A stretch of 64,000 bases of DNA. Source: Eutreptiella sp. 'Long Island Sound 2002'. Lineage: Eukaryota; Protista; Euglenida. Shown piece after piece: positions 633-56,126 of the stretch. The notes under the pieces were generated by a model. The model searched no databases. It worked only from the letters and a program-made list of their open reading frames with translations, and was not told where the DNA came from. Position 1 is the first letter of the stretch. Every line of letters begins with the position of its first letter. Location: NCBI GenBank assembly GCA_964036045.1, contig OZ038378.1:181474001-181538000 (forward strand), written 5' to 3'. The translations under genes and the position numbers were made by a program.

Positions 633-1496
633 CCCCCCTGTCGTCGGATAGTGTTTGAGGACCAAAAAGCGCCGTGTGACGTGGGTGGTCGTTGGGACAA
701 GGCCGTGAGGTACCCAGAAGCCCTCCGGAACAATTTTTCTCCAGCCCATTGCACCACACCCCCACACTGTTCACCTGCACCACACAAGCATGCCCTGTAC
801 ACAGGGTGTGAAATGCTGAGGCTGGGTAGCATGGCGGCAATCGACATCGCGCAACCAAATGGGCTCCAAAGGGCCCTCCAGGGCGTCATGGCACTCGCCG
901 CCTGGGCCCAAGGGTGTAGGTTCGAAACCCTTGGATGTCCAACTCCTACAATAGCTCCAGTCTCGCCCCGTCAACCACTTTTTATCGTGAGAGTGCTCTG
1001 AAGCCTTACAAAATTTTCATTCTGCTTCATCCACTGTTCATTCTTGCTGATTTTACAATGATGTGGAAAGTTGAGAATGTTTGATAATTTGACATCAATC
1101 AATTTTTCTCTGGCCTCCGTTGGACAGACGCAACGTAGGAACGCGACAGGAGTCCACGGAGTCGTGCTGCCATGTCCAGAAAAAACCAAAACCACGTCTA
1201 ATTCAGGCCAGAGCACCAGCGGCTGCCCAGACACAACAAGAGGTATGTCTAGCACGTTCCATGCCATACGCACCCAACCCTCAGCAATAGCCCTCCAACT
1301 TCATGCCCTGTACCGCACATGGCATTCCATCAGCCCCAAACAGCATCCAAATAACATTCCGTTTGTCACACAAATGTGGCCTTGCATGCACATCTCTCTG
1401 TCGCGCAGCTGCCAGGGGTCAAACATATGCCCCACAGACAAAAAGACAAGGCTTTAAAAAGCGCCGGGGGTGGTTGTTATGCAAGGCAGTCATTGC
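633..1496. repeat. Dispersed repeat X, copy 1 (coding-like, probably decayed mobile element)
   Basis: 633-876 and 1208-1496 match 9381-9624 and 9641-9926 closely by eye. Both strands are largely open in register. The upstream plus frame has CQLC..TPAH. Confidence 0.8.
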
Positions 1497-3184
1497 ACAA
1501 GGGCCGCAGTTCATTTTGACCCACCATCAGCATTCTTGCGTACCTTACCATACCGTTGAAATGCGTCATAAAGAATGGAAAATGGGGACAATGGTTGAAA
1601 GGATTCAACCTGTCGGCCCGGAAGATTGGGGCCCAAAAGAGGGCGGAAATGCTACGTCACCCCTGCATTCTCGGAGGTCCCCAACAAAGGGGACAAAATC
1701 AGAAATCAAAACCTACGCTAGGGGTCACCATGATGCTCCTAGTATCTCAAAGTATGGGTCTCTAGTACAGCCAGACACCCAAATAGGTGCACTGCGCTAA
1801 GTGCGCCCCCTTAGTGCACCCCCTAGAAGGGCACCGGTGGGGCACGGGTCACAAAAGATACCAAGCGCTCAAACGTTCCCCCAAGGCCTTGTGCAAGGGG
1901 GGTGAGGGGGGGCACCAAGCGAGGATGAGCTGAATCTGTTACCAGGAAATGCAGCGGGAACCGCCACGCCCATAGGCATTGATCTCGGTATGCTGCTAGA
2001 GCACAAATTCAAGTCACATGGCATAAATCATATCTGCGGTGCCTCATGCATAGTGTTTTCCCCACGTGTGTGAGGATCTATTGACTCCAACAGTTTCCTT
2101 GCACTGTGGCGACGCTTCCACAAGGGGAGGGAAACAGGGGCACCAGTGCAACCTTGCCCCATTGTCCAACCCTTGATGTGTGCTGCTGTGATTTGGGCGG
2201 ACATCCTTGGCCTACGCAAACACGATGGGCAAACACAATGCGAAGTAAAGGAAGGAAGCACAGGGCAGAAGCTGGACATAACTGCCCATCAAATGACCTG
2301 GTTGAGCAGTGAGACATGACCACAGCAAAAAGAGAATAGGAAGGATTGCACAAGGTGAGGGGGTTATGACTTCAACAAAGGGCCACAGGTTGCGGATGCC
2401 CAGTAAGAGCAGGGAAACAATAGAGCAACGAAAAGCAGCAGGCAGTGGCAGCAGTATAGTGCATTCACTGGGGGCGTTTGGGCACAGCGCACACAGCACC
2501 CGTTATTTGGGAAACGGGATACCGCACGGGAATCAACTCCAAAACCACCAACTATTCAGACCACCACATGCAGGGGCCAAAAGCTGGAAAGTACATGTCT
2601 TGTAACAATGACGTGAGTCACCCTTGAATGACTCTGCAAAAGACTGGAGATTGAAAACAGCACACTGCAGTGCAATGCACCTCTCAAGACTCTCAATTAT
2701 GTACAGACAATACAATATGAGCGTCGGCAGACAAACCTCACACCTGCTTCCTACGTCCCTCCTGCTTCCCAAACCTCTCTGTGGGCTTTCCATTGAAAAA
2801 ATATGAGCACTCCTTTGGCCCCGGGGGTCGCCTGCACAGGACAGGATGAGAAGGGGGGGGATGGGGGGGGGGGGGTTGTCACAATGTAGATGACTCAAAC
2901 TGATTGCTTCGTTGCGCTGAATACAACGAGCCACATATCATGGGCAAAGCAGTTTTCTGCGGGTCCCGAAACTAGCTCTGCAGCGACAATGGCTTTCGAA
3001 TACCAGGGGGGGCTCCGCATGCTTTGACTGGGCCTCCCTCCCGCCCCTCTGTGCCCAACGACCAGTAAAGCCGAACCCAGAGCCGTCAGACGTAGCGCTC
3101 ACATGAGTGCATGTGCAGTGGGAAGAGATTGTAGGCGGAGGTGCACGAGCCCCCCATGAGAGGGAGCACATGGGCCCTATCAAT

Positions 3185-3788
3185 CCCCCCCCCAAATCGG
3201 CGAAGAAATCCCAACAAGTCGGCGGAACAAATCGGCGGACCAATGTTTCAGCAAAACAGGTTCCCAGTGCCCTGGATCTTAATCCGAGGCTCCAAACACA
3301 CCTTCCTTTCGGTTGCTTTGTAGTTGGTGTCGTGTGGTAATCCAAAATATCTCTCAATTTTCAAAAAAAAAAAATCCTCTCTCGGTCTGTACATGCTCCC
3401 TGAGGACAATGTATGCCAGTGTCAGCCAGTGGTCCAGTGGTATATACCCTGGTCTAAAAATTAATCGGCGGTGGTGCAGAAGCCAGAAGCCCCAACAAGT
3501 CAGCAAAACCAAATCACAGAAACCCCACAAATCGGTTCAATTCCAGGACCCATTGTTTTTTGCACTTTTGTCACTTGTCCTGAGGAGAAAAATGGTTTCA
3601 CTGCACAAACAAAGCTTCCCGGAAGAAGATGAATGCACACAGGCTTCCACTGACTCTGTGTCGGCAAAACGAATCAGCGAATTCACAGAAACCCCGCAAA
3701 TCAGCAGAACAAATGGGCGAAATCCAGAAACCCAACAAATCGGCGAAGTCGGCCGAATTCAGCCGCCGATTTGGGGGGGGGGGGGGGG
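3185..3788. mobile_element. MITE-like element, family A copy 1
   Basis: Inverted ends C9-AAATCGGCG / CGCCGATTT-G16. Interior 3267-3580 is homologous to 51898-52160. Confidence 0.65.
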
Positions 3789-6019
3789 TGCCCTATGTAC
3801 ACTGTGTGGCTGAAGCCATATGCCGTCTGCACTCACCTCTGCTCTGGGACAGTTTCGGTTGGATGCAACACAAAACGAGTTGTTTGAGCATTTGGGCGAC
3901 AGGGTCCAGTTTCAAGTACAATGTCTTGAGCATTTGTATCCTGAGCCCTTCAGTCCTTGTGCTTGTTGTCCGACAGGAAGTGCGTGCGCAACAACCTCCG
4001 TATCTAACGAATGGGGGTGTCATGCCAATCCAAATCTGGAGCCACAACAATGCATGGCTTCCACAGTTGTAGAACCAACACATGTAACGTGGCAAGGCAT
4101 GGCGTGCGCTAGGGCCATGACGCAATTCCATCAGTGCTACCCCCCCCTTGCAAACAACCTAATTCCGAGGCCTTGTGCCAAACCCCCCCTTGCAACCCCC
4201 CCCCCCCCCCCCCCCTGTCGTGACGGTCCCGCCCCCTCCCCAGGGGGGGGAGGGGTCATGATGTGACAGTTCCCCGCGGGGGGATTGCACCACAAAAAAA
4301 AACCATAGCACTATACCTGCAGCAGTGCATGCAAAACACCGGTAGTGTCAATCCCATTGAAATATGATGTTGTGCGCGTGCCCTTCCCATAGGCACTGTA
4401 TGAAACTTGGTTCTACCAGTCCAAACAATCGTTCGTTGCATCCACCAAGACTGTGCCCCGGGGTGCAGCAGGGGATGGCGGTCATTGGGGTTTGGAGACC
4501 CTGTCTAAACCACAGCGGTGTGAATGCTGCTGTCATGTTTGGCTGGGGCAGTGGGCTTCCAAAAGCGGTCCATGAACGTTTGGGGGGTCCGTTTCAGACC
4601 ACGCACGGCATCTGTTTTGCATGTGTCTCTCCCCCCCCCCTGGGGTCCTGAGGCAGACCACGACACATACCTCAGCTCTGGCACCCTCTGAGGCAGTGAC
4701 AGACAGCAAAAGCAATCTCACTCAACATATGGGGGAATTTTTTTTTCGGCTCTAGAAGAGCATGATGGAGCCAAGAGGTGGCTCAGCGCCTGGGCAGACT
4801 GAGCCCATTTTGTTGGCGCAAATAGTGCTGTACGGGCGGGCAAATCGGAGCTGACTGGCAGCTCACCAGAAACATCAACTATGGACAGAATGGCATGCGG
4901 CGAGGTCTGTTCACTCGAGGGTTTTTCCGGTCCCCCCCCCTGATCCCTGCATGCTGTCCTGTTGCTGTGTCTTCTGTGGCAAAACTAAAATTATTTGCTT
5001 AACTTTAGGTTTGGGTGTAGGTGCCTTTGCTGCAGCTGTACGCGCTGGTCACAGAGAAGGACAGTCGCCAGCAGATGCTGGCGACTGGGGCGACGGGGCA
5101 ACCCGTACTGCCTCAAACACATACCTTGGCTGCTGTATGGTCCACAGCTCTGTCCCAAGTACCCTAGTATTGGATGTGCAGGAACTCAGGTGACGATTAC
5201 CCCTCCCCTCGAGAGGGGGAGGGGGTCTAATTGAGAGAGAGAGAGAGAGAGAGCAATGGTCAGTTCTGATTGACCGAATGCCCCCGCCTTAGGCACTTTC
5301 AGCCTTTAGCCCAATGATGTGCGTCCATCTCAATAGAGCTGCAATACACTATGTACAGTGTGTCGTGCCCCACCTCACGGATACACTCATATGTACAGAC
5401 CAAGGCTATCCATGCAAAATATAAGGACAGTGTCACCTAAACCTCAAGACACAGGCAGCTCTGAGAGTCATCCTCGGCACTCCTCTGGCCTTAGAGGTTG
5501 ACTGTTGGGGTCCTTGTGAAGATGAAAAGCAAAATCAGGGGCGTGTGACCCGGCACCCCAAAATGAGAGTCCCCTGCATGCCCGAACAGAGCGACGTGTA
5601 AAAAGAGGGCAGGTAGCTTAATTGACTGTACTTGCATGATGATAGGGGAAAAGGGAAAAGCTGAATGGACTATGGCAGGCATGTGTCACTTACCTCAGTG
5701 CTGAAACTGTCGGAGCTGGCGGCCCATGAAATTGTGGAGGCTGTGTCCGAGCCTCCTGGGTCCTCTGCTTCCCCAACATTATCAGAATCTGGATCAGACA
5801 TGGTCTCCAGACTGATAGAGCGTAGCATGGCGCTTGCTTTGGCAGAATTTGGAAAAACAGCAATGGGGGATGCCGCCGAAAAATCAAGCTGTTGAGAAAC
5901 CGCGGGTGGAACCGATGTGCACAGGGTGATCCTGGCTCGCTTTCCAGGCGGTGGAGTGCACGGTACAAAAGCTTCCTTGCGTGGTGTGTTAATAGAAGGG
6001 TATAGGGGGTGCATGTGGA

Positions 6020-9926: not shown

Positions 9927-10625
9927 GTGAGGGGTGTGGGGGCAGGATGGCGGTCGCAGGGCTCGGGGCCGAGCGCCACTCGTTACGCTGCATGTGCAGT
10001 GTGCTCAACGTGCGGCTCGAGAAACGAGTAGCGATTAGGTGCTGTCAGTTGGCTGACGAGTGACGGCAGTTGGCGGTTCTGGGCTGCGGCCCTTGCAATA
10101 CCCGCTCGGTGGTGGGCCGTGAACCAACAGCGGGTCGAGAACATGGAAAGGGGGATGAAGGAGCCCTGGGCCGCAGGAACATCTGGTCTGGGGGGGAGAG
10201 GCTGCTGGGTGCTGCAGGCCGGGGGATACGCCCTCGCACACTGCGACCCGACCATCGCGCTGTACTCTCCGGTCCGGGGGGCATCAGAGACATCGCAAAG
10301 AGGAGGAGGGGGCACTCTACCGGGACGTTCGCACTCTCAAATCTGCTGCCTTGGGCTGCAAATACACACAGCTACCGAAGGGGGGGCTATAGAGAAACAA
10401 GGCTCAGTCTACCGGAAAATCCCAAACAGGTCCACTACGGATTCTGTCGTCGTGTGCGGAGCATTGACTGACGTCGTGCGGCAGTCCCTGGCGTCCGCCA
10501 ATTCGTGTGTGGTTTTGGATCGGCCCGGTCACACTGGGCCAGAGACTACGCGCTCGGGCCATCTTATGCGACGAGGCCACAAGGTGTGTGATGTGTCAGG
10601 AGGGTGTGCAAAAGAGGGCCCAGTA

Positions 10626-11056
10626 CCGGGGGGGGGGGGGGGATATTCCGCGTCTAGCAAAATCCGAATCTACAAATTCTGGCGCGACAAGCCCCTTGCC
10701 ATTTCTGAAAAAGGAGCGAACAAATCATGCAGGGTTGGCATAAGTTGCTCATGAGAAACAGTGGACGGTTGCGGTTATTTCCCAGAGGACTTCCCTTATG
10801 CATCAACCAGCACTCTTGTCTGCACCCCATTGAATGCCACAGAAACACTACAAATGAGGAAGTACCTCTGCAGCACTTCGGTGACTTCCATGGGAAACTA
10901 ATTATCATGAACCAAATCCTTCTTTGGCATGGTACAAGTGAGGGAAGGCCTAACGTATTCCCGTGCAAAAACACCGAACAAATTGCGCACAAAAGTTTGG
11001 CACAGAATTTGTGACACAGAACTTCTCCCCTGAATAATTCCCACCCCCCCCCCCGG
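10626..11056. mobile_element. MITE-like element, family B copy 1, TA-flanked
   Basis: TA|CCGGGG(G)n ... (C)nCCGG|TA. Interior homologous to 32429-32707. Confidence 0.7.
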
Positions 11057-11874
11057 TATGAGGCCACTTCATGAGGCTACGCTACGAGGCTACGAAACCT
11101 ACGCTACACAGCAGATCCTGCTATGCGGCGGTACAACGACGCTATGAGGCCCAAATATGAACCCACGGTCAACGCAACAGAGATGTCTTCAGCCCCAATG
11201 ACGGCGGATGTTGGCTGATCCACGGCGTCCAGCCCGCCGATGGAAGTGGACCAGAGGAATGGACTGTGCCACTGCCAAAGCCGTGCGGTTTCCAGTGGGT
11301 GACGGAAATCGAGGAGGTGAACATCACGCATCGTTGGGCACACGTGCACGGGCCGTCGCGGATGGTGTGCGTCTCACGCTAAAAAAAATGCGCGCCGTTC
11401 AAAATGGCCGGGCATGTGTGCGCCGCGTTGGAGGGGGGGGGGGGGGGGGGCGTGGGGGATCCCGTGAAGAGGGCCCCGCTGGGGCTCATGCGAGCTGCGT
11501 ATCGACTCCCATCAAATGGTACGTCTCTTGACAAACGTTGCGGTACCCCTTTGGTACACCGCCAATGAAAATGGGGCAGGGGAATCCGCTGCGGGAGCAC
11601 AACGCATAAGCGCATCAGCGTCCGGAGGCTCAGAGAAAATCCGGTGGGGCGGTCCCCCATCCGGACTGCCGGCGGGTGCAAATGAGTGCTGAACGGGAGA
11701 ACGGGGGCATTAAGACAAAACAAACGAGGCCGATGTGCCAGCGCCCGGCACACGGCGTTGTGGCGCCATGAGGCGGGGGCTACGTGGCCCTTCCCGGAAG
11801 AGCGCGACGGACATCTGCGGCACCGGAAGCCGACGGAAGGGCACACGCCTGGACACGCCCCTGCGCATCCGCCC

Positions 11875-12342
11875 TCAATCCGCAAAGAAATACGCGCGCA
11901 GGGGCGCCGCCACCCTCAGCGCGACGAACTCCCGCGCCTCCCGCCCCTCCTCATTGGAGGACAGGTCCAGGTGCACGGTGCTCAGGGAGGGCGAGGTCTT
12001 GATCGCGGAGACGGCCTTCACGCCGCTGGTGCCCACCTCGTTGCACGAGAGGTCCAGATGCAGCGAGTGCAGCGAGGGCGACACCTTCAGGACCGCCAGC
12101 GCCAGGGCGCCGCGGGGCCCCACTTCGTTCCGCGACAGGTCGAGGTACAGGTCGTGCAGGGAGGGCGGGCGCTGGAAGGCCGCCAGGGCCTGCGCGCCGC
12201 CGTCACGCACGTAGTTGTCCTTGAGGTCCAAATGGAGGGACTGGAGGGAGGGCGCGTCCTTCAGAGCCGCCAGTGCCTGGGCCCCACTGGCCACCACTCC
12301 GTTGGAGGCCAGGTCCAAGTGCAGCGTTTGCAGCAGCGACGC
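11875..12342 (-). CDS. F-box-like/LRR protein, exon 3 (last; ASLLQTLHLDLASN...RAYFFAD*)
   Basis: TAG acceptor at 12345-12343, phase 0, 156 codons including stop. Five LxxLxLxLxxN repeats. Joins exon 2 as LKE|ASLLQTLHLDL. Confidence 0.9.
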   Translation of the reverse strand, partial: ASLLQTLHLDLASNGVVASGAQALAALKDAPSLQSLHLDLKDNYVRDGGAQALAAFQRPPSLHDLYLDLSRNEVGPRGALALAVLKVSPSLHSLHLDLSCNEVGTSGVKAVSAIKTSPSLSTVHLDLSSNEEGREAREFVALRVAAPLRAYFFAD

Positions 12343-12346
12343 CTAA

Positions 12347-15300
12347 TGCAGCACAGCACAACACTGCACAGCACAGCACAGCACTGCACAGCACAGCACA
12401 GCACAGCACAGCACTGCACTGCACAGCACTGCACAGCACTGCACTGCACTGCACAGCACTGCACAGCACAGCACAGCACTGCACAGCACAGCACAGCACT
12501 GCACAGCACTGCACAGCACAGCACTGCACTGCACTGCACTGCACTGCACAGCACAGCACAGCACAGCACTGCACTGCACAGCACTGCACAGCACAGCACT
12601 GCACTGCACTGCATTGCACTGCACTGCACTGCACAGCACTGCACTGCACAGCACAGCACTGCACTGCACTGCACTGCACTGCACAGCACAGCACAGCACA
12701 GCACAGCACAGCACTGCACTGCACTGCACTGCACTGCACAGCACTGCACTGCACAGCACAGCACAGCACAGCACAGCACAGCACTGCACAGCACAGCACA
12801 GCACAGCACTGCACAGCACTGCACTGCACAGCACAGCACAGCACAGCACTGCACAGCACTGCACTGCACTGCACTGCACTGCACTGCACTGCACTGCACT
12901 GCACTGCACTGCACAGCACAGCACTGCACTGCACAGCACAGCACAGCACAGCACTGCACAGCACAGCACAGCACAGCACAGCACAGCACTGCACTGCACT
13001 GCACAGCACAGCACAGCACAGCACAGCACAGCACAGCACAGCACAGCACAGCACTGCACTGCACTGCACTGCACAGCACAGCACAGCACAGCACTGCACA
13101 GCACTGCACAGCACTGCACAGCACAGCACAGCACAGCACTGCACTGCACTGCACAGCACTGCACAGCACAGCACTGCACAGCACAGCACTGCACAGCACA
13201 GCACAGCACAGCACTGCACAGCACTGCACAGCACTGCACAGCACAGCACAGCACAGCACTGCACAGCACAGCACGCAGCACAGCACTGCACAGCACAGCA
13301 CTGCACTGCACTGCACTGCACAGCACTGCACTGCACTGCACTGCACAGCACAGCACAGCACAGCACAGCACTGCACTGCACTGCACTGCACTGCACAGCA
13401 CAGCACAGCACTGCACAGCACTGCACTGCACAGCACAGCACAGCACAGCACAGCACAGCACAGCACAGCACAGCACAGCACAGCACAGCACAGCACAGCA
13501 CAGCACTGCACAGCGGAGCACAGCACAGCAGAGCACAGCACAGCACTGCACTGCACTGCACTGCACTGCACAGCACAGCACTGCACTGCACAGCACTGCA
13601 CAGCACTGCACAGCACAGCACAGCACAGCACTGCACAGCACAGCACAGCACAGCACAGCACAGCACAGCACAGCACTGCACAGCACAGCACAGCACAGCT
13701 CTGCACTGCACTGCACAGCACAGCACTGCACTGCACTGCACAGCACAGCACTGCACAGCACAGCACAGCACTGCACTGCACAGCACAGCACTGCACAGCA
13801 CAGCACAGCACAGCACTGCACTGCACAGCACTGCACAGCACAGCACAGCACAGCACTGCACAGCACAGCACTGCACAGCACTGCACAGCACTGCACAGCA
13901 CAGCACAGCACAGCACTGCACTGCACAGCACTGCACTGCACAGCACAGCACAGCACAGCACTGCACAGCACTGCACAGCACTGCACTGCACAGCACAGCA
14001 CAGCACTGCACTGCACAGCACTGCACTGCACAGCACAGCACAGCACAGCACAGCACAGCACAGCACAGCACAGCACAGCACAGCACAGCACTGCACAGCG
14101 CAGCACAGCACAGCACTGCACAGCACAGCACAGCACAGCACAGCACTGCACTGCACAGCACAGCACAGCACAGCACAGCACAGCACAGCACAGCACAGCA
14201 CAGCACTGCACTGCACTGCACTGCACTGCACTGCACAGCACTGCACTGCACTGCACTGCACAGCACAGCACTGCACTGCACTGCACAGCACAGCACAGCA
14301 CAGCACAGCACAGCACAGCACTGCACTGCACTGCACTGCACAGCACAGCACTGCACAGCACAGCACAGCACAGCACAGCACTGCACAGCACTGCACAGCA
14401 CAGCACAGCACAGCACAGCACTGCACTGCACTGCACTGCACTGCACAGCACTGCACTGCACAGCACAGCACAGCACAGCACAGCACAGCACTGCACAGCA
14501 CAGCACAGCACAGCACAGCACTGCACAGCACTGCACAGCACTGCACTGCACAGCACAGCACTGCACTGCACTGCACTGCACAGCACAGCACTGCACTGCA
14601 CAGCACAGCACAGCACTGCACTGCACTGCACTGCACTGCACAGCACAGCACAGCACAGCACAGCACAGCACTGCACTGCACTGCACTGCACAGCACAGCA
14701 CTGCACAGCACAGCACAGCACAGCACAGCACTGCACAGCACTGCACAGCACAGCACAGCACAGCACAGCACTGCACTGCACTGCACTGCACTGCGCAGCA
14801 CTGCACTGCACTGCACAGCACAGCACAGCACAGCACAGCACTGCACAGCACAGCACAGCACAGCACTGCACTGCACTGCACTGCACAGCACAGCACTGCA
14901 CAGCACAGCACAGCACAGCACAGCACTGCACAGCACTGCACAGCACAGCACAGCACAGCACAGCACTGCACTGCACTGCACTGCACTGCACAGCACTGCA
15001 CTGCACAGCACAGCACAGCACAGCACAGCACAGCACTGCACAGCACAGCACAGCACAGCACAGCACTGCACAGCACTGCACAGCACTGCACTGCACAGCA
15101 CAGCACTGCACTGCACTGCACTGCACAGCACAGCACTGCACTGCACAGCACAGCACAGCACTGCACTGCACTGCACTGCACTGCACAGCACAGCACAGCA
15201 CAGCACAGCACAGCACTGCACTGCACTGCACTGCACAGCACAGCACTGCACAGCACAGCACAGCACAGCACAGCACTGCACAGCACTGCAGAGCACAGCA

Positions 15301-18300
15301 CAGCACAGCACAGCACAGCACAGCACAGCACTGCACTGCACTGCACAGCACAGCACAGCACAGCACAGCACAGCACAGCACAGCACAGCACTGCACTGCA
15401 CTGCACTGCACAGCACAGCACAGCACAGCACTGCACAGCACTGCACAGCACTGCACAGCACAGCACAGCACAGCACTGCACTGCACAGCACAGCACTGCA
15501 CAGCACAGCACTGCACAGCACAGCACTGCACAGCACAGCACAGCACAGCACTGCACAGCACTGCACAGCACTGCACAGCACAGCACAGCACAGCACTGCA
15601 CAGCACAGCACGCAGCACAGCACAGCACAGCACAGCACTGCACTGCACTGCACTGCACAGCACTGCACTGCACTGCACTGCACAGCACAGCACAGCACAG
15701 CACAGCACTGCACTGCACTGCACTGCACTGCACAGCACAGCACAGCACTGCACAGCACTGCACTGCACAGCACAGCACAGCACAGCACAGCACAGCACAG
15801 CACAGCACAGCACTGCACTGCACAGCACTGCACAGCACAGCACAGCACAGCACTGCACAGCACTGCACAGCACTGCACAGCACTGCACAGCACAGCACAG
15901 CACTGCACAGCACTGCACTGCACAGCACAGCACTGCACAGCACAGCACAGCACAGCAGAGCACAGCACAGCACTGCACTGCACTGCACTGCACTGCACAG
16001 CACAGCACTGCACTGCACAGCACTGCACAGCACTGCACAGCACAGCACAGCACAGCACTGCACAGCACAGCACTGCACAGCACTGCACAGCACAGCACAG
16101 CACTGCACAGCACAGCACAGCACAGCACTGCACTGCACTGCACAGCACAGCACAGCACAGCACAGCACAGCACTGCACTGCACAGCACTGCACAGCACTG
16201 CACTGCACAGCACAGCACTGCACAGCACAGCACAGCACAGCACTGCACTGCACAGCACTGCACAGCACAGCACAGCACAGCACAGCACAGCACAGCACTG
16301 CACAGCACTGCACAGCACAGCACAGCACAGCACAGCACAGCACTGCACTGCACAGCACTGCACTGCACAGCACAGCACAGCACAGCACTGCACAGCACTG
16401 CACTGCACTGCACTGCACAGCACAGCACAGCACTGCACTGCACAGCACTGCACTGCACAGCACAGCACAGCACAGCACAGCACAGCACAGCACAGCACAG
16501 CACAGCACAGCACTGCACTGCACAGCACAGCACAGCACTGCACAGCACAGCACAGCACAGCACAGCACTGCACTGCACAGCACAGCACAGCACAGCACAG
16601 CACAGCACAGCACAGCACAGCACAGCACAGCACTGCACTGCACTGCACTGCACTGCACAGCACTGCACTGCACTGCACTGCACAGCACAGCACTGCACTG
16701 CACTGCACTGCACAGCACAGCACAGCACAGCACAGCACAGCACTGCACTGCACTGCACTGCACAGCACAGCACTGCACAGCACAGCACAGCACAGCACAG
16801 CACTGCACAGCACTGCACAGCACAGCACAGCACAGCACAGCACTGCACTGCACTGCACTGCACTGCACAGCACTGCACTGCACAGCACAGCACAGCACAG
16901 CACAGCACAGCACTGCACAGCACAGCACAGCACAGCACAGCACTGCACAGCACTGCACAGCACTGCACTGCACAGCACAGCACAGCACTGCACTGCACAG
17001 CACTGCACTGCACAGCACAGCACAGCACAGCACAGCACAGCACAGCACAGCACAGCACAGCACAGCACAGCACAGCACTGCACTGCACAGCACAGCACTG
17101 CACTGCACTGCACTGCACTGCACTGCACAGCACAGCACAGCACAGCACAGCACAGCACAGCACTGCACTGCACTGCACAGCACTGCACTGCACAGCACAG
17201 CACAGCACAGCACAGCACAGCACTGCACAGCACAGCACAGCACAGCACTGCACTGCACTGCACTGCACAGCACAGCACTGCACAGCACAGCACAGCACAG
17301 CACTGCACTGCACAGCACAGCACAGCACAGCACAGCACAGCACAGCACAGCACAGCACAGCACAGCACTGCACAGCACAGCACTGCACAGCACAGCACAG
17401 CACAGCACTGCACTGCACAGCACAGCACAGCACTGCACAGCACAGCACAGCACTGCACTGCACTGCACAGCACAGCACAGCACTGCACAGCACAGCACAG
17501 CACTGCACTGCACTGCACTGCACTGCACAGCACAGCACTGCACAGCACTGCACAGCACTGCACAGCACAGCACAGCACAGCACTGCACTGCACAGCACAG
17601 CACTGCACAGCACAGCACTGCACAGCACAGCACAGCACTGCACTGCACGCAGCACAGCACTGCACAGCACTGCACAGCACTGCACAGCACTGCACTGCAC
17701 TGCACAGCACTGCACTGCACTGCACTGCACTGCACTGCACAGCACAGCACTGCACTGCACGCAGCACAGCACAGCACAGCACAGCACAGCACAGCACTGC
17801 ACTGCACTGCACTGCACAGCACTGCACTGCACTGCACTGCACTGCACTGCACAGCACAGCACTGCACTGCACTGCACTGCACTGCACAGCACAGCACAGC
17901 ACAGCACAGCACTGCACTGCACTGCACTGCACAGCACAGCACAGCACTGCACAGCACTGCACAGCACTGCACAGCACAGCACAGCACAGCACTGCACAGC
18001 ACAGCACAGCACAGCACTGCACAGCACAGCACAGCACTGCACAGCACAGCACAGCACAGCACAGCACTGCACTGCACAGCACAGCACAGCACAGCACAGC
18101 ACAGCACAGCACAGCACAGCACAGCACTGCACTGCACTGCACTGCACTGCACTGCACAGCACAGCACAGCACAGCACAGCACAGCACAGCACTGCACTGC
18201 ACAGCACTGCACAGCACAGCACTGCACAGCACTGCACAGCACAGCACTGCACAGCACTGCACAGCACTGCACAGCACAGCACAGCACTGCACTGCACAGC

Positions 18301-21300
18301 ACTGCACTGCACAGCACAGCACAGCACTGCACTGCACTGCACTGCACAGCACAGCACTGCACAGCACTGCACAGCACAGCACTGCACTGCACTGCACTGC
18401 ACTGCACTGCACTGCACTGCGCAGCACAGCACAGCACAGCACTGCACTGCACAGCACAGCACAGCACAGCACAGCACTGCACAGCACAGCACAGCACTGC
18501 ACTGCACTGCACAGCACAGCACTGCACAGCACTGCACAGCACTGCACAGCACAGCACAGCACAGCACTGCACTGCACTGCACTGCACAGCACAGCACAGC
18601 ACTGCACAGCACAGCACAGCACTGCACTGCACGCAGCACAGCACTGCACAGCAGTGCACAGCACTGCACAGCACAGCACTGCACAGCACAGCACAGCACT
18701 GCACAGCACAGCACGCAGCACAGCACAGCACAGCACAGCACTGCACTGCACTGCACTGCACAGCACTGCACAGCACAGCACAGCACAGCACAGCACAGCA
18801 CTGCACTGCACAGCACAGCACAGCACAGCACAGCACAGCACTGCACAGCACAGCACAGCACAGCACTGCACTGCACTGCACTGCACAGCACAGCACTGCA
18901 CAGCACTGCACAGCACAGCACTGCACTGCACTGCACTGCACTGCACTGCACTGCACTGCGCAGCACAGCACAGCACAGCACTGCACTGCACAGCACAGCA
19001 CAGCACAGCACAGCACTGCACAGCACAGCACAGCACTGCACTGCACTGCACAGCACAGCACTGCACAGCACTGCACAGCACTGCACAGCACAGCACAGCA
19101 CAGCACTGCACTGCACTGCACTGCACAGCACAGCACAGCACTGCACAGCACAGCACAGCACTGCACTGCACGCAGCACAGCACTGCACAGCAGTGCACAG
19201 CACTGCACAGCACAGCACTGCACAGCACAGCACAGCACTGCACAGCACAGCACGCAGCACAGCACAGCACAGCACAGCACTGCACTGCACTGCACTGCAC
19301 AGCACTGCACTGCACTGCACTGCACAGCACTGCACAGCACAGCACTGCACTGCACTGCACTGCACTGCACTGCACAGCACAGCACAGCACTGCACAGCAC
19401 TGCACTGCACAGCACAGCACAGCACAGCACAGCACAGCACAGCACAGCACAGCACAGCACAGCACAGCACAGCACTGCACAGCACAGCACAGCACTGCAC
19501 AGCACAGCACAGCACAGCACAGCACTGCACAGCACAGCACAGCACAGCACTGCACAGCACAGCACAGCACTGCACTGCACTGCACTGCACAGCACTGCAC
19601 TGCAGTGCACTGCACAGCACAGCACAGCACTGCACAGCACTGCACAGCACTGCACAGCACAGCACAGCACAGCACTGCACTGCACTGCACTGCACTGCAC
19701 TGCACTGCACAGCACTGCACAGCACAGCACAGCACTGCACAGCACTGCACAGCACAGCACAGCACAGCACAGCACAGCACTGCACTGCACAGCACAGCAC
19801 AGCACAGCACTGCACAGCACAGCACAGCACTGCATTGCACTGCACAGCACAGCACAGCACAGCACAGCACAGCACTGCACTGCACTGCACTGCACTGCAC
19901 AGCACAGCACAGCACTGCACAGCACTGCACAGCACTGCACAGCACAGCACAGCACAGCACTGCACTGCACTGCACTGCACTGCACAGCACAGCACTGCAC
20001 AGCACAGCACTGCACAGCACAGCACTGCACAGCACTGCACAGCACAGCACAGCACAGCACTGCACAGCACAGCACAGCACAGCACTGCACTGCACAGAAC
20101 AGCACAGCACAGCACAGCACAGCACTGCACTGCACAGCACAGCACAGCACAGCACTGCACAGCACAGCACAGCACTGCACTGCACTGCACAGCACAGCAC
20201 AGCACAGCACAGCACAGCACTGCACTGCACTGCACTGCACTGCACAGCACAGCACAGCACTGCACAGCACTGCACAGCACTGCACAGCACAGCACAGCAC
20301 AGCACTGCACTGCACTGCACTGCACAGCACAGCACTGCACTGCACGCAGCACAGCACTGCACAGCACTGCACAGCACTGCACAGCACAGCACAGCACAGC
20401 ACAGCACAGCACAGCACAGCACAGCACGCAGCACAGCACAGCACAGCACAGCACTGCACTGCACTGCACTGCACAGCACTGCACTGCACTGCACTGCACA
20501 GCACTGCACTGCACAGCACTGCACTGCACAGCACAGCACAGCACAGCACAGCACAGCACAGCACAGCACAGCACTGCACAGCACAGCACAGCACTGCACA
20601 GCACAGCACAGCACAGCACAGCACTGCACAGCACAGCACAGCACTGCACAGCACAGCACTGCACTGCACTGCACTGCACAGCACAGCACAGCACAGCACA
20701 GCACAGCACAGCACAGCACTGCACTGCACTGCACAGCACAGCACTGCACTGCACTGCACTGCACAGCACAGCACAGCACAGCACAGCACAGCACAGCACA
20801 GCACAGCACAGCACTGCACAGCACAGCACAGCACTGCACAGCACAGCACAGCACAGCACAGCACTGCACAGCACAGCACAGCACAGCACTGCACAGCACA
20901 GCACAGCACTGCACTGTACTGCACTGCACACCACAGCACAGCACTGCACAGCACTGCACAGCACTGCACAGCACAGCACAGCACAGCACTGCACAGCACA
21001 GCACAGCACAGCACAGCACTGCACTGCACAGCACAGCACTGCACAGCACAGCACAGCACAGCACTGCACAGCACAGCACAGCACAGCACAGCACTGCACA
21101 GCACAGCACAGCACAGCACAGAACAGCACTGCACTGCACAGCACAGCACAGCACAGCACTGCACAGCACAGCACAGCACTGCACTGCACTGCACTGCACA
21201 GCACAGCACAGCACAGCACAGCACAGCACAGCACTGCACTGCACTGCACTGCACAGCACAGCACAGCACTGCACAGCACTGCACAGCACTGCACAGCACA

Positions 21301-22306
21301 GCACAGCACAGCACTGCACTGCACTGCACTGCACTGCACAGCACAGCACTGCACTGCACGCAGCACAGCACTGCACAGCACTGCACAGCACTGCACAGCA
21401 CTGCACAGCACAGCACAGCACAGCACAGCACAGCACAGCACGCAGCACAGCACAGCACAGCACAGCACTGCACTGCACTGCACTGCACAGCACTCCACTG
21501 CACTGCACTGCACAGCACTGCACTGCACAGCACAGCACTGCACTGCACTGCACTGCACAGCACAGCACAGCACAGCACAGCACAGCACAGCACAGCACAG
21601 CACAGCACTGCACAGCACAGCACAGCACTGCACAGCACAGCACAGCACAGCACAGCACTGCACAGCACAGCACAGCACAGCACTGCACAGCACAGCACAG
21701 CACTGCACTGCACTGCACAGCACTGCACAGCACAGCACAGCACAGCACTGCACAGCACTGCACAGCACAGCACAGCACTGCACTGCACAGCACAGCACTG
21801 CACAGCACAGCACAGCACAGCACAGCACTGCACTGCACTGCACAGCACAGCACAGCACAGCACAGCACAGCACAGCACAGCACAGCACTGCACTGCACTG
21901 CACTGCACTGCACAGCACAGCACAGCACAGCACAGCACAGCACAGCACTGCACTGCACAGCACAGCACAGCACTGCACAGCACTGCACAGCACAGCACAG
22001 CACAGCACTGCACAGCACAGCACAGCACAGCACAGCACTGCACAGCACTGCACAGCACTGCACTGCACTGCACTGCACAGCACTGCACTGCACAGCACAG
22101 CACAGCACTGCACTGCACAGCACTGCACTGCACAGCACTGCACAGCACAGCACTGCACAGCACTGCACAGCACAGCACAGCACAGCACTGCACTGCACGC
22201 AGCACAGCACAGCACACTACAGCACAGCACACCACAGCGCATAGCATACCACATCACGGCACACAATACACCACATTACACCACAGCACAGCACAGCACA
22301 GCACAC
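12347..22306. repeat. Binary pentanucleotide satellite (GCACA/GCACT)n, about 2000 units, filling intron 2
   Basis: Directly visible. Bounded by donor GAG|GTGTGC (22306) and acceptor TAG (12343). Confidence 0.97.
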
Positions 22307-22837
22307 CTCCTTCAGGCCTGCCAGGGCCTGCGCCCCAAGGGCCCCGATGTGGTTGTACCGGAGGTCCAAGTAGAGCACGCGGAGGGCGGGCGCCTCCTTC
22401 AGCGCGGCCAGGGCCTGGGCTCCGCTCGTCCCCACGTCACACACGGAGTTGCTCTTGTGGCAGGCGGGAAGGAGGAGGTGGAGGGTGTGGAGTGTGGGGA
22501 GGTCCTTGAGCGTCGCCAGGGCCCTGGCCCCGCGGTCCGCCACCGCGTTGAACCCCAGGTTCAGGTACAGGACCCGGAGGGCCTTGGCGGTCCGGAGCGT
22601 CCCCAGCGCCTCCGCCCCCGTGTCGTGCACGCTGTTGCAGGAGAGGTCGAGGTGCAGCGTGTGCAGCAGCGGGGCGCACCGCAGCCGGGCGAGGGCCACG
22701 GCGCCGCCGTCGCGCAGGTCGTTGCAGGCGAGCCCCAGGTGCAGCACGCGCAGCGCCGGCGCGTCCTTCAGGGACCCCAGACCGTCGGTGGTGCTGATGC
22801 CGTGGATGTTGTTGCAGGTGAGGTCCAGGTGGAGCAC
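22307..22837 (-). CDS. F-box-like/LRR protein, exon 2 (VLHLDLTCN...ALAGLKE)
   Basis: Pyrimidine tract plus CAG acceptor at 22840-22838, GT donor at 22306. 531 nt = 177 codons, six LRRs. Confidence 0.92.
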
Positions 22838-23725
22838 CTGGAGAGCAGTGGATGAGAGAGTGCCCAGCAGGCCTTTGCTTAGAGGGGGGGGGGAAGGGGG
22901 CGTCAGGGCGGGTTCCTAGTGAGGAGCCTTGTGGATGGCGCTGGGTCCTACTCAGTTGCCCGTAGGGCGAGGCTCCTTCCTACTGAGCTGACTGACATGT
23001 GGGGCTGGATCCTACTGAGACCCCTTCACCAGAGCAGGGCCACCCCCAGCCCCCGCCCCCACTAAGCAAAGGCCTGGTGCCCGGAGAAAGCGCACGAAAG
23101 TGTAGTCCGCCCCCCCCCCGCAGCTTCCCCACGTTCCGCAGGAGGAGCTCCGAATCGCATGCCACGTGCCTCCACAACGCAGTTGAAGTTTGCGCACCAG
23201 CACCCCCCAATACCCCCCTCGACGTCAACGCGACTTCGAAGGACCAGGGGACGGTGGGTGTCTGGCAATCCCTCACGCTGGACCCCCTCCGCTGGATGGC
23301 CATCGGGGCTCACAGGAGGTGTTAACAGTGGTGGCAAAAGTGGCTCCTTGCGTCTGGACAGGCGGTTGCAGGGCAGTTGCTGGCGAGTACCCACTGGTTT
23401 TCCTGGGATTCAGTGACAACTTTTTGACCACTGCGACAGTGACAGTGACAGTGACAGTGACAGTGACAAGTGTTGACCCGCACAAAATTGCTTCAGCGCC
23501 TTCGGCACGAGGCTTCACGGTGACTGAGTGCTGGCGTCCCACTCAACTGAGCCCACCCCGCCCACTTTTGCGGGCCTCTATTGACCCCCAGCCCGCAATT
23601 GTAGACCCCCTGCTCCACGTGGGCAGAGATTTTGGGGGTCTTGGGGCCGGTGGGGGGGGGGGGGGGGGACAACAGCAACCGAAAAGACACCGTCCAGACG
23701 ACCGGAGTCCCGCCGCACAACACAC

Positions 23726-24502
23726 CTCCAGCCGCTTGGCCTCCCGCAGCACGCCCAACGACTGCGCCCCGGCGGCGCACACTTGATTGCAGGCGAGGTT
23801 CACGCGGAGGGTCTGGAGCGCCGGGGTCTCCCGCAGCGCCGTCAGGATGCGCGCCCCCCCGGCCGTGATCCGGTTGTGGCTGAGGTCGAGGTGCAGGTCC
23901 CGGAGCGCCGGGCAGTGCCGCAGGCCCACCAGCCCAAAGATGTCCGCGTCGCGCGCGTTGCTGTGGGCGAGCTCGAGGTGCAGCGTCTGCAGGGCTCGCA
24001 TGCCCCGTGCCACGGTCATCGACCGGGCGATGCTGTCCCCCACCGCGTTGCAGGCCAGGCCCAGCCGCAGCGCCTCCAGGAGCGGCGCCTCCTGGAACGC
24101 CTCCAGCGCGGCCAGCACCCCGGCGACCCCGTCCCGGTCGCTGGGGCTCGCGGACAGCCGCAGCGTCCGCATCGCCGCGGTCCACTCGCGGAACATGGCC
24201 GCGGACTTGAGGCTGCTGCGCCGGCGCGTCGCCAGGAGCGGGAGCAGGGGGTCGGACTTGGGGCACAGCCACTTCGCGGGGAGGCCGATGAGCGGGGGGC
24301 CCGGGGAGGTGGGGTGGCTCCTTGTCCGGGCGGGGAATTGCATGTGCAGGTGCTGCTTCTCCAGCAGCTGCCACGTCTTGCGGCACACGCAGCTGAGCGC
24401 TCGGGATTGCAGATATTCGGAGATCACCAGCACGATGTCGATGGGGAGCTCCAGGGCTCTGCCGCCTGCGCACGTGTACCAAGATGAGAGACACATGGCC
24501 AT
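23726..24502 (-). CDS. F-box-like/LRR protein, exon 1
   Basis: ATG at 24502. F-box-like LELPIDIVLVISEYLQSRALSCVCRKTWQLL, then five LRRs. Donor GAG|GTGTGT at 23725. 777 nt = 259 codons, phase 0 into exon 2. Confidence 0.88.
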
Positions 24503-25245
24503 GGGGGGCGGGGGGTTGCAGTACAATTCTGGACACCGACAGCCGTGGCACGAGGGGGAAGGGGAGGGTGTTCAGTCGAAGGGGGAAGGAGTTGGTTTCT
24601 ATTGCTTGGCAGATTTGAATTCGCCATCAGCCTCTGAGCACTGAGCACTTTGCAAACCCCGCAGCGCAGGCGTGTGGGGTTAGGGGGGAGAGGGGGTCCT
24701 TGGGTTGGCATTGGGGTGGGGCGGGTTGGCCGGTATTTGTATTTAAGGGCACATGGCCCCAGGGTCAGTTCTGGGCATACCATCACAAACGACTGGCATG
24801 CCCCCAGCCAGGCCTCTTTCGTGGCAAAAGAGTCCCTCCGAAAACAAGGAGGGTGACATAACCAGTGATTGGTTTGAATCGCTTTCCTTGTGTGAGTTTG
24901 GCTTGCTTAAAGGGGTGCTGCAGGGCTTAGAATTAGGGAACCAAACCCGCTCTTGTGTTGGAAGATGGGTCGCAATAGGCGGGGGAGGCAGTGTGGGCTT
25001 TGGCTCTGGGATGCTTTTGTTGTGCGAGGAACAAGATTCTTGAAAATTGCCTTTAGAGTTCTCAAAGAAAAGTTCTTGAAGGTTAGACTTGGGTTGCTGA
25101 ATAAAAAAATGCCTCAAGGTGAGATCTAGACCATTGAATCAAAAATTCCTAAAGGCCATATTATGTGTATCACATTCCTCAAACAATAGTTCTGTTATGA
25201 AGAGAACATTGCTTGCTCACAGGTCCGTAAAAATTCCCCTTTGAA

Positions 25246-40014: not shown

Positions 40015-40093
40015 GGACCGGTAGCTTAGTGGTTAGAGCGCCCGCTTGTTTGGATCATTGCGGGAGACGCGGGTTCAAGTCCTGCCCGAGTCC
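40015..40093 (+). tRNA. tRNA-like gene or pseudogene with 14-nt anticodon loop (anticodon ambiguous, GTT or TGG)
   Basis: A-box TAGCTTAGTGG, stem CCCGC/GCGGG, T-arm GCGGG-TTCAAGT-CCTGC, bulged acceptor stem, followed by T7. Confidence 0.55.
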
Positions 40094-41350: not shown

Positions 41351-41423
41351 AGGCCCCGGCGGGGTTCGAACCCGCGACCTCACGCTTACTGGGCGTGCGC
41401 TACTACCACTGAGCTACAGAGCC
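41351..41423 (-). tRNA. trnT: tRNA-Thr(AGT), intronic, same strand as host gene
   Basis: Cloverleaf GGCTCTG/CGGGGCC, anticodon arm CACGC-CCAGTAA-GCGTG, T-arm GCGGG-TTCGAAC-CCCGC. Atypical C33, extra base in the D-arm, no oligo-T terminator. Confidence 0.8.
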
Positions 41424-44399: not shown

Positions 44400-47300
44400 T
44401 CCCTGCAGCCCTTGCCCCCCCTGCGCAGCCTCACGCTGCGCCCCTGCGCAGCCCCATGCTTCGCCCCGGCTCAGTCCCACTCTGCACCCCTAGAGCAGCC
44501 GCACGCTGCGCCCCTGTGCAGCCCCACACCGCGCACCTTGCGCAGCTGCAAGATACGCCGTAGCGCAGCTGCATGCTGCGCTCCAGCGCAGCCGCATGCT
44601 GCGCTCCAGCGCAGCCGCATGCTGCACCCATGCGCAGCCCCACGCTGCGCCCCAATACAGCCGCATGCTGCACCCATGCGCAGTTCCACACCGCGCCCCT
44701 GCACAGCCGCATGCTGCGCCCATGCGCAGCCCCACACCACGCCCCTTGCGCAGCCGCAAGCTACGCCCCAGCGCAGCCGCATGCTGCGCCCCTGCGCAGC
44801 CCCACGCTGCGCCCATGCGCAAGCGCATGCTACGACTAGGCGCAATTCTCCGCCGCGGCCCTACGCAGCCGCATGCTGCGCTCATGCGCAGTTCCACGCT
44901 GCGCTCCAACCCAGCCGCATGCTGTGCCCCTGCGCAACCCCACGTTGCGCCTTGGCGCAGCCCCACGCTGCGCTCCAGCGCAGCCGCATGCTGCGCCCCT
45001 GCGCAACCCCACGCTGCACCCCTTGCGCAGCCGCATGCTGCGTCCCTGTGCAACCCCACGCTGTGCTCCTTGCGCAGCCGCATGCTGCGCGCCTGCGCGG
45101 CCCCGTACTGCGCCCCTGCGCAGCGTGCAGTTGCGCATGGGCGCACCATGCGGCTGCGCAAGGGGCGCGGTGTGGGGCTGAGCCGGGGCAAAGCCTGCCG
45201 CTGTGCAGGGGCGCAGCTCTCCGGCGCAGCCACATGCTGCGCCCCTGCACAGCCCGACGCGGCGCCCCTTCCGCAGCCGCTGCGCCCCAGCGCGGCCCGA
45301 GGTTGCGCCAATGCACAGTTCCACGCTGCACCCCTCTGCAGCCCCATGCTGTGCCCATGCGCAGAGTTCCACGCTGCGCCCCTGCGCTGCGCGCCAGCGC
45401 AGCCGCATGCTATGCTCCAGCGCAGCCGCATGCTGCGCCCCTGCGCCACCCCACACTGCCCCCTTTGCGCAGCCGCATGCTGCGCCCCTGTGCGGCCCCG
45501 CACTGCACCCTAGCACAGTCCCACGCTGCGCCCCAACGCAGCCACATGCTGCGCCCCTGCGCAGTCCCACGCTGGGCCCCAGCGCAGCCCCATTCTGCGC
45601 CCCTTGCTCAGCCACACGCTGCGCCCCTTCTGCAGCCGCTGTGCCCCAGCGCAGTGCCCCAGCGCAGCTCCTCGCTGCCCCCTGCACAGCCCCATGCTGC
45701 GCCCCTTGCGCATCCCCATGGTGCGACCATGCGCAGTTCCACGCTGCGCTCCAGCCCAGCCGCATGCTGCGCCCCCGCGCAACCCCACGCTGCGCCCCTT
45801 GCGCAGCCGCACGTTGCGCTGCAACGCGGTCCCACACCGCGACCTAGCGCCGCTGCATACTGCGCGCCTGCGCAGCCCCGTACTGTGCTCCTGCGTAGTC
45901 CCACGTTGCGCCCCTAGCTCAGCCACACGCTGCGCCCCTTCTGCAGCCGCTGCGCCCCAGCGCGGCCCCATGCTTCACCCATGCGCAGTTCTTTTCCACA
46001 CTGCGCCCCTGCACAGCCCCATGCTTCGCCCCGGCTCAGTCCCACACCGCGCCCCATGCGCAGCCGCATCCCAGCCCCAAACTGCGCCCATGCATAGCCG
46101 CATGCTGCGCCCATGCGCAGCCGCATGCTGCGCCCCTGCACAACCACATGCTGTGCTTCTGCACAGCCGCATGTTGCGCCCCTGCACAACCGCATGCTGT
46201 GCTTCTACACAGCCGCATGCTGCGCCCATGCGCAGTTCCACACTGCGCCCATGCGCAGCCACATGCTGCGCCCCTGCACAGCCGCATGCTGCGCCCATGC
46301 GCAGTTCCGTGCTGCGCCACAGCGCACCCGCATGCCGCGCTCTAGCGCGGCCCTGTACTGCGCCCCCGCACAGTCCTACGTTGCGCCCCAACGCAGCAAC
46401 ATGCTGCTCTCCAGCGTAGCCCCATGCTGCGCCCCTGCGCAGCCCCACGCGGCGCCCCTTCCGCAGCCGCTGCGCTTGAGCGGCCCGAGGCTGCGCCAAT
46501 GCGCAGTTCCACGCTGCACCCTTGCGCAGCCGCGTACTGCGCCCCTATACAGCCGCATGCTGTGTCCATGCGCAGCCGCGTACTGCGCCCATATGCAGCC
46601 GCATGTTGCACCTGTGCGCAGCCATATGCTGCGCCCTTGCGCAGCCGCATGCTGCGCCCATGCGCAATTCCACTCTGCGCCCCAGCGCAGCTGCATGCTA
46701 CAACCCAGCGCAGCCGCATACTGCGCCCCTGCGCCACCCCACACTGCCCCCTTTGCGCAGCCGCATGCTGCGCCCCTGTGCGGCCCCGCACTGCACCCTA
46801 GCACAGTCCCACGCTGCACCCCAACGCAGCCACATGCTGCGCCCCTGCGCAGTCCCACGCTGGGCCCCATTTTCAGGGGGGGGGGGAAATGCGGTCGCCG
46901 GGATTGGCAAAAAATGCGGAAAAATGCGGAAAAAATGCGGAAAATGCGGCAAAAAATGCGATAGAAAATGCGGTTTTGTTAGAATGGTGTTTGCCCCTCG
47001 AAACCCCTATGTTTCGTCTCGTCTTGCACAATTGGGCGCTCAAAGCATGGACGGTTCGATGGAACAACTTAGTGCAGTAGTTCAACTCAAGAATATCACG
47101 GACTAGGCTCAAAACCGCTAGGGGCAGAAGCTGCAGCTGCTTGGTCAGGCCAGACCGCTGAATCTCCGCGCCGCATCAGGTGCTCCCCCATTGACCCAAA
47201 CCGCCGGGCTCCCCGGGGGGGGGGGGGGATACCCCAACATACATACCTCAAAATGATCCCCATGACACGCTGTTCATTTTGAATATACACAACTGGGGAA

Positions 47301-55512: not shown

Positions 55513-55735
55513 TGTTGTTGCTGCTGCTGTTGTTGTTGTTGCTGCTGCTGCTGCTGTTGTTGTTGTTGCTGCTGCTGCTGCTGTTGTTGTTGTTGCTGCT
55601 GCTGCTGCTGTTGGTGTTGTTGTTGCTGCTGTTGTTGTTGTTGTTGTTGCTGCTGTTGTTGTTGCTGTTGTTGTTGTTGTTGTTGCTGTTGCTGTTGTTG
55701 TTGTTGTTGCTGTTGCTGTTGTTGTTGTTGTTGCT

Positions 55736-55766
<31 letters not shown>

Positions 55767-55769
55767 TTG

Positions 55770-55814
<45 letters not shown>

Positions 55815-55844
55815 TTGTTGTTGTTGCTGTTGTTGTTGTTGTTG

Positions 55845-55913
<69 letters not shown>

Positions 55914-55926
55914 TTGCTGCTGCTGC

Positions 55927-55980
<54 letters not shown>

Positions 55981-56016
55981 TGTTGTTGTTGTTGTTGCTG
56001 TTGTTGTTGTTGTTGC

Positions 56017-56056
<40 letters not shown>

Positions 56057-56073: not shown

Positions 56074-56126
<53 letters not shown>

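Follow-up and report, generated by a model that had tools for sequence, protein, structure and literature searches.

How does an intron come to consist, over nearly its whole length, of one pentamer in two variants, and is the folding of its RNA the reason why it persists? This question is raised by a 64,000-nt stretch of the genome of Eutreptiella sp. 'Long Island Sound 2002' (assembly GCA_964036045.1, contig OZ038378.1, positions 181,474,001 to 181,538,000; hereafter the window), in which an intron of a leucine-rich repeat (LRR) gene is occupied by a (GCWGT)n array. An initial annotation of this DNA had proposed a self-collapsing double-stranded RNA (dsRNA) intron, whose two mutually complementary units, GCAGU and GCUGU, would bring the splice sites together. 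From the analyses described below we consider it likely that a young pentamer satellite expansion filled a conventional, once-short GT-AG intron, and that the RNA duplex is a by-product of its composition.

Intron borders and host gene

Border inspection and the continuity of the LRR units define a phase-0 GT-AG intron of 9,964 nt on the minus strand (12343..22306), in exact agreement with the coordinates and strand first assigned to it. The borders read GAG|GTGTGC ... CATTAG|GCG, with the GT at 22306-22305 and the AG at 12344-12343. The upstream exon (22307..22837, minus strand) encodes RNI-type LRRs and ends in ...GAQALAGLKE (Pfam LRR_6, E 6.4e-18), and the downstream exon (11875..12342, minus strand) begins with ASLLQTLHLDL and terminates with a stop codon at 11875-11877 (LRR_6, E 4.2e-17). 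A paralogue of 59% identity, found in a public assembly, is built of the 29-residue unit GAQALAGLKEAPALHTLDLNL. When the LKE|ASLLQTLHLDL junction was aligned to the paralogue unit LKEAPALHTLDLNL, no residue was lost or added. Since this unit is continuous over the junction, GT(22306)...AG(12343) splits exactly one LRR unit, which is restored by splicing.

Coding read-through of the array was ruled out, as all three sense frames encounter a stop codon less than 90 nt past the donor and division of the intron length by 3 leaves a remainder of 1. The stops in all three frames near the donor imply that retention of the intron would truncate the protein. The exon/array edge at 22314 is reached by independent short-read DNA contigs from four runs and two samples of one study, and these contigs stop at the array. 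They represent genomic DNA and not RNA, because the neighbouring intron is covered as well.

The next exon upstream of the same gene (23726..24526, minus strand) gives a weak LRR_6 match. In this exon an F-box-like motif was recognised by eye only and was not confirmed by the Pfam search; apart from this motif, an F-box label is based only on how a Eutreptiella protein of 45% identity is named. The best named protein relative of the exon-1 peptide belongs to Eutreptiella gymnastica. A near-identical protein was not present in a set of 5.8 billion proteins (size range 97-310 aa), in which the best match reached 59%. The 59%-identical LRR paralogue itself, at 10450-12236 of locus L001, consists of the 87-bp (29-residue) unit repeated 20.6 times in tandem without an intron, and an uninterrupted RuBisCO large-subunit open reading frame (ORF) lies about 3 kb from it on the same 266-kb contig (15443-16870).

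Composition and turnover of the array

Tandem Repeats Finder (TRF) reported the (GCWGT)n pentamer satellite (12349..22305, minus strand) as a single array of period 5 with 1,986 copies and 91% matches. In a minus-strand parse, perfect units cover 9,705 of the 9,964 nt and comprise 1,185 copies of GCTGT (61%) and 756 of GCAGT (39%), which bears out the earlier description of the intron as a mosaic of these two units. The same parse of the whole intron contained no GCCGT or GCGGT unit. A 20-nt pattern of four consecutive GCWGT units matched 1,925 times, compared to 0.01 matches expected by chance. Short interruptions number 38, and 13 of these are the identical 7-mer GCTGCGT. The two variants are intermixed throughout, with a GCAGT fraction of 0.28-0.50 in each of twenty 100-unit bins and mixed composition of both the first and the last 40 units. 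For about 9.8 kb the array is free of stop codons in any frame. The three early stop codons fall into a degenerate 5' edge of GT-rich decayed pentamers (22197..22306, minus strand), which, judged from its sequence, is the older part of the array.

Duplications within the array were sought by self-alignment in unit space. Any register of the array has a baseline identity of about 90.5%. Direct self-alignment scored 162, compared to 28.5 +/- 2.6 (maximum 36) in 24 run-preserving shuffles. A pair of duplicated blocks of 2.3 and 2.2 kb (14645-16981 and 12388-14559, minus strand) shares 97.7% identity, with gaps that are multiples of 5. Further pairs are an overlapping tandem duplication of about 0.65 kb per copy within 18111..19308 (18658-19308 and 18111-18769, minus strand; 98.3% identity), blocks of about 0.9 kb within 19794..21746 (20818-21746 and 19794-20707, minus strand; 98.2% identity) and blocks of about 1.0 kb (14330-15314 and 13770-14769; 96.7% identity). 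Mismatches between the copies are mostly swaps of the central A/T (95/109, 87%), and the length of 20 out of 23 gap runs in the block alignments is a multiple of 5 nt. The array evolves by turnover at the level of units, through slippage, unequal exchange and conversion, and not by point mutation, which affects about 1.3% of the units. With head-to-tail units, insertions and deletions of whole units and higher-order direct duplications, it has the properties of a satellite.

The decayed GT-rich 5' edge, the donor lying in phase with the array (G|GTGT) and the start of the neighbouring intron (GTGTGTTGTGCG) point to seeding close to the donor. In the history that we propose, the array would have arisen from a GT-rich stretch next to the 5' splice site at a time when the intron was still short; it grew by slippage and unequal exchange and has filled the intron almost completely.

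Splice signals and intron class

The 5' splice site GTGTG (22302..22306, minus strand) coincides with the first unit, G|GTGT, and matches the published 5' splice-site consensus of E. gracilis GT-AG introns (PMC11170887). GTGTG occurs 5 times in the 9,964 nt, 4 times within the degenerate 5' edge, and GT dinucleotides number 1,978. At the 3' end of the intron (12343..12365, minus strand) the array closes with ...GCTGCATTAG, where the last GCAGT, carrying an A at -23 (window 12365), is followed by an AG-free G/U-rich tail and by CATTAG, the sole non-repeat sequence at this end. The A at -23 is a plausible candidate for the branch point. A C-rich polypyrimidine tract before the 3' splice site, a feature of E. 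gracilis GT-AG introns (PMC11170887), is absent: the last 47 nt ahead of the AG are array sequence and comprise 9 C, 17 T, 18 G and 3 A. As far as borders and the GTGTG consensus indicate, the intron is of the conventional euglenid GT-AG spliceosomal type. Its splicing would now use the GTGTG donor, the A of the terminal GCAGU as branch point and the first AG after the AG-free tail.

Tandem repeats inside introns are documented in E. gracilis (PMC11170887), and tandem repeats make up 9.85% of an E. gracilis genome assembly (PMC11252322). The intron described here exceeds the mean length of the published E. gracilis introns (about 0.5 kb) about 20-fold and is longer than the longest of the 28,337 catalogued, which measures 8,197 nt, but the draft genome behind that catalogue could not have assembled such an array (PMC11170887).

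That we are not dealing with a working intron at all, either because the expansion disrupted a silent or pseudogenised LRR copy or because the array length is an assembly artefact, appears most improbable. The exons on either side have open frames and strong LRR_6 scores, the exact GT...AG borders with the GTGTG consensus restore the repeat unit without loss, independent contigs confirm the exon/array edge, and the non-periodic mosaic with its diverged internal duplications is unlike an assembler artefact. These observations have to be set against several that would fit a defective or misassembled locus, namely the lack of a near-identical protein in the protein set, recovery of the exon only in DNA contigs among the sequencing runs searched, short-read contigs that break off at the array, the intronless LRR array of the paralogue and an intron length beyond the published E. 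gracilis maximum.

Euglenids also possess non-conventional (NC) introns, for which knock-ins in Euglena defined the code 5'-N3-CDG ... CH'G-N5-6|R. In this code CAG-CTG and CTG-CAG both work, flanking complementarity also plays a part, and fully synthetic NC introns are functional (PMC12501133). Inside the intron we counted 1,969 donor-type (N3-CDG) and 1,965 acceptor-type (CHG-N6-purine) matches to it; for a spacer of 5 nt, a purine follows at 9 positions and a pyrimidine at all others. The acceptor part of the code is matched at the 3' end (CTG-CATTAG|G). At the intron's own 5' border the code fails, as GTG-TGC offers no CDG at +4 and the first CTG, at +6, faces another CTG. The borders are GT and AG and thus lack the non-GT-AG character of NC introns. 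Failure of the code at the 5' border, combined with GT-AG borders and GTGTG, implies that the intron as a whole is conventional and not NC.

The array could still act as a substrate of NC splicing, if GCAGU/GCUGU hairpins were excised piecemeal as circles and shortened the intron before the final GT-AG splice. This would draw on the nearly 2,000 matches of each type, on a code that has been defined experimentally in Euglena with both motif orders and synthetic introns (PMC12501133), and on the flanking complementarity that the code asks for and the array provides. We regard the chance of this as decidedly remote, given that the match is one of sequence motifs, that the own 5' border of the intron fits the conventional consensus instead of the code, and that pyrimidines follow almost every 5-nt spacer.

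The neighbouring intron of the same gene (22838-23725, minus strand; 888 nt) starts with the GT-rich pentamer-like string GTGTGTTGTGCG and holds no array. It contains a 215-bp MITE-like element (MITEs are miniature inverted-repeat transposable elements) at 22865-23079, with 36-nt terminal inverted repeats of 83% complementarity that begin with CAGCAGG and finish with CCTGGTG. The summed contig word depth of this element in DNA runs is about 35,000, which indicates an extremely abundant family. Its terminal repeats, starting with CAG and ending with CTG, accord with a euglenid genome, as do the GTGTG donor and the relative from E. gymnastica. A short GTGACA-type hexamer microsatellite at 23437-23468 likewise shows very high word depth and has many alternative joints in DNA contigs.

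Predicted folding of the array RNA

All fold figures were obtained with pieces of 0.15-1.5 kb. GCAGU and GCUGU pair at 5 of 5 positions (three Watson-Crick and two G-U pairs) compared to 3 of 5 for the antisense units, which confirms the mutual complementarity noted in the initial annotation. Sense RNA pieces of 1 kb have predicted folding energies of -713 to -763 kcal/mol (-0.71 to -0.76 kcal/nt), with 91-94% of the bases predicted to be paired, whereas antisense pieces of the same size reach -295 to -343 kcal/mol (-0.30 to -0.34 kcal/nt). Concordantly, a sense 150-nt piece folds at -98.3 kcal/mol compared to -78.7 +/- 2.8 kcal/mol for its dinucleotide shuffles (z -6.95), and the corresponding antisense values are -43.8 kcal/mol and z +3.1. 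As a prediction, the restriction of the strong fold to the sense RNA is therefore real. The dinucleotide shuffles alone account for about 80% of the sense 150-nt folding energy. Of the 15 variants that differ from GCUGU by a single base, 3 (about 1 in 5) reach full wobble complementarity, as do 7% over all pentamer/variant pairs, and the mutual complementarity of the two units is a modest coincidence.

The single-unit controls of 1 kb, which the initial annotation had called for, speak against a need for both unit types. (GCAGU)200 reached -821 kcal/mol and is more stable than the mosaic; only (GCUGU)200 was weak, at -424 kcal/mol. Perfect alternation or blocks of both units gave -880 kcal/mol per 1 kb. 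(GCAGU)200 pairs in a register that had been overlooked before, in which the UGCA palindrome yields four Watson-Crick pairs and one G-G mismatch. Repeats of r(CUG)n and r(CAG)n form hairpins in which C-G/G-C steps surround a U-U or A-A mismatch. Similarly, (GCUGU)n and (GCAGU)n self-pair around a central U-U or A-A mismatch, but the extra GU of the pentamer adds tandem wobble pairs and mixing of the two units removes the central mismatch. At the DNA level neither strand folds better than its own shuffles, which does not speak for a special mechanism of expansion through hairpins.

Influence of the unit order

Shuffle controls were computed for six 1-kb pieces with the interruptions fixed and either the A/T labels or, separately, the run lengths permuted. 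The real unit order lay within the shuffles in all six pieces (label z +0.9 to -2.2, run z +0.6 to -2.7) and has no folding advantage over arrays with shuffled labels or runs. Alignment of the array with its reversed, A/T-swapped self in unit space gave a score of 26 compared to 27 +/- 4 for shuffles, thus no mirrored A/T arrangement was detected, and no A-run was mirrored by a T-run in this alignment. Nor do the intron ends prefer each other: the 5' and 3' terminal 150-mers pair at -159.5 kcal/mol, compared to -172.2 and -217.8 kcal/mol with their own neighbours, and linking these end pieces to random internal pieces gave -162 and -201 kcal/mol on average. The assumption that the fold brings the splice sites together is not supported by this weaker pairing of the ends, and the two units are not segregated to opposite ends.

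What stands of the model of a self-collapsing dsRNA intron is the intron itself, its wobble-complementary units and a predicted fold specific to the sense RNA; an effect of arrangement and a bridging of the ends were not found. Every test run points to the base sequence of the repeat, and not to an arrangement selected for splicing, as the source of the folding. The near-complete pairing predicted for the sense transcript stems from a unit that is G/U-rich and nearly palindromic (GC-W-GU). The two variants fold alike in whatever mixture, and we accordingly regard the fold as a by-product of composition. Such a fold may make an intron of this length compact and easier to tolerate. We see no sign that selection acted on it, nor that it serves specifically to bridge the splice sites.

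A selective version of the model would hold that the mosaic is kept because collapse of the sense RNA into a G-U duplex shortens the distance between the splice sites and masks about 2,000 internal GT and 760 AG. Near-complete predicted pairing specific to the sense RNA, the scarcity of GTGTG among the GT dinucleotides of the intron and the uniform sense orientation of exon-fused arrays in other assemblies (see below) all agree with it, and internal mis-splicing would be costly in an array that is stop-free in every frame over about 9.8 kb. We nevertheless consider this unlikely, as a random unit order folds just as well as the real one, the units are neither mirrored nor segregated to the ends, and the ends have no mutual preference. 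Moreover, single-unit (GCAGU)n is more stable than the mosaic, the array turns over rapidly via direct duplication, and the array at the related locus L005 is decaying (77% matches).

Similar arrays in other genes and points against a by-product

A clean 1.2-kb piece of the array was translated in the sense (A-V-Q/L-C-S/C) and antisense (T-A-Q/L-H-S/C) directions and each translation was searched against the set of 5.8 billion proteins, which recovered 26 sense-type and 14 antisense-type ORFs. The Pfam domains that accompany sense-type arrays are VWA (twice), HATPase_c (twice), RME-8, MR_MLE_N, an ion channel, Sec1, a cNMP-binding domain, PF16043 and a protein kinase. In 9 of these 11 ORFs the array lies 3' of the exon.

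At three loci fetched from three European Nucleotide Archive (ENA) assemblies, introns of unrelated genes hold sense-oriented mosaics of GCTGT and GCAGT that are smaller than the present array and in part decayed. In an RME-8 gene an array of about 48 units starts about 20 nt inside the intron, and in a VWA gene about 450 nt of array follow directly after the exon, beside a perfect (GCTCT)32. The array in the intron of a kinase gene (L005) extends over 670 nt with 77% matches and ends about 40 nt before the acceptor; its decay argues against strong maintenance.

Several observations weigh against a fold that is a mere by-product of a satellite expansion. The array is very homogeneous, with about 1.3% variant units, no other central letter and both units in every 100-unit bin; this homogeneity and the persistence of both units require either youth with ongoing homogenisation or some constraint. 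Admixture of GCAGU nearly doubles the stability over pure (GCUGU)n (-424 versus about -740 kcal/mol), hence the minority unit matters thermodynamically. As a C-rich polypyrimidine tract is missing, the splicing signals must come from the array itself. Furthermore, an exon with a Pfam domain is fused in frame in 11 of the 26 sense-type ORFs but in none of the 14 antisense-type ORFs (Fisher's test, one-sided p = 0.003; 0.008 after collapsing two orthologue pairs to leave 9 independent genes). A sense bias had been predicted at the outset, and this cross-assembly sample, which is small and rests on the ORFs of a gene caller, agrees with the prediction. It is what a sense-specific role predicts, and it is equally expected from seeding by GT-rich donor sequence or from a transcription-linked mutation bias.

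In the VWA-gene intron the perfect (GCTCT)32 stands right after the mosaic array (L003, 6922-7080) and represents another single-base variant that was amplified alone. An antisense-type (ACWGC)n ORF was found on a contig flagged as circular (L007; 140,576 bp, 86x) of the same assembly as the LRR paralogues.

Relation to known repeat-containing introns

Human intronic pentanucleotide expansions are comparable in that arrays at the kilobase scale lie wholly within introns, are often two-variant mosaics and grow by slippage and unequal exchange, as in the TTTCA/TTTTA group and in spinocerebellar ataxia type 10 (SCA10; ATTCT/ATTCC, ATXN10 intron 9), where alleles comprise 850-4,500 repeats, pure or mixed (PMC9460507; review PMC8773600). 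The human arrays are A/T-rich pathogenic alleles whose units are not wobble-complementary, whereas the array described here is G/T-rich on the sense strand, stretches from the donor to a point no more than 10 nt before the acceptor and belongs to the reference genome of a protist. The (AC)m-(GT)n introns of zebrafish share with it intronic simple repeats, a very stable predicted intramolecular duplex and, on the sense strand, a GT-rich repeat beside the 5' splice site. Their defining feature is that complementary repeats at opposite boundaries bridge the splice sites (Lin et al. 2016, PMC4691745), unlike the evenly intermixed units and the ends without preferred mutual pairing found here. Splicing of the zebrafish class is characterised by dependence on the repeats and independence of U2AF2. 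Euglenid NC introns (PMC12501133, PMC6221363) occur in the same organismal group, and the two units carry the mutually pairing CAG and CUG at a spacing that fits N3-CWG and CWG-N6-R, but the present intron has canonical GT-AG borders with GTGTG and its 5' border lacks a CDG at +4.

If the array is a neutral satellite, it illustrates clearly to what extent an intron can be enlarged by a simple repeat. The non-repeat remainder consists of a 5-nt donor motif and a 10-nt acceptor end, which makes the locus a natural test of the minimal signals of the euglenid spliceosome. The sense orientation of exon-fused arrays and the match to the NC code could each show whether strand-specific RNA structure or the NC machinery helps cells to tolerate such arrays. 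In a broader and very unlikely scenario, sense (GCWGU)n arrays would be a tolerated or even favoured route to very long euglenid introns, with a G-U duplex that hides thousands of cryptic GT/AG sites and at the same time presents about 2,000 CAG/CUG pairs fitting the NC code, so that, ahead of the GT-AG splice, the array would be compacted or would lose one piece after another in the form of circles. If true, this compaction or trimming of sense arrays would link both euglenid splicing systems within one intron.

Other repeats and genes in the window

A second two-variant mosaic array occupies 55513-56640, where plus-strand TTG/CTG triplets extend over about 1.1 kb and read CAA/CAG on the minus strand. 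From its sequence, this is probably a very long coding polyglutamine tract made of two synonymous codons, with acidic sequence of coding appearance on either side. Two further blocks (44418-46869 and 47677-48736; 3.5 kb in total) belong to a C-rich satellite of 23 bp with higher-order periods of 46, 69 and 208 bp; the palindrome CTGCGCAG is part of its unit. The sole Rfam matches in the window are two tRNA genes, at 40015-40093 on the plus strand and 41351-41423 on the minus strand.

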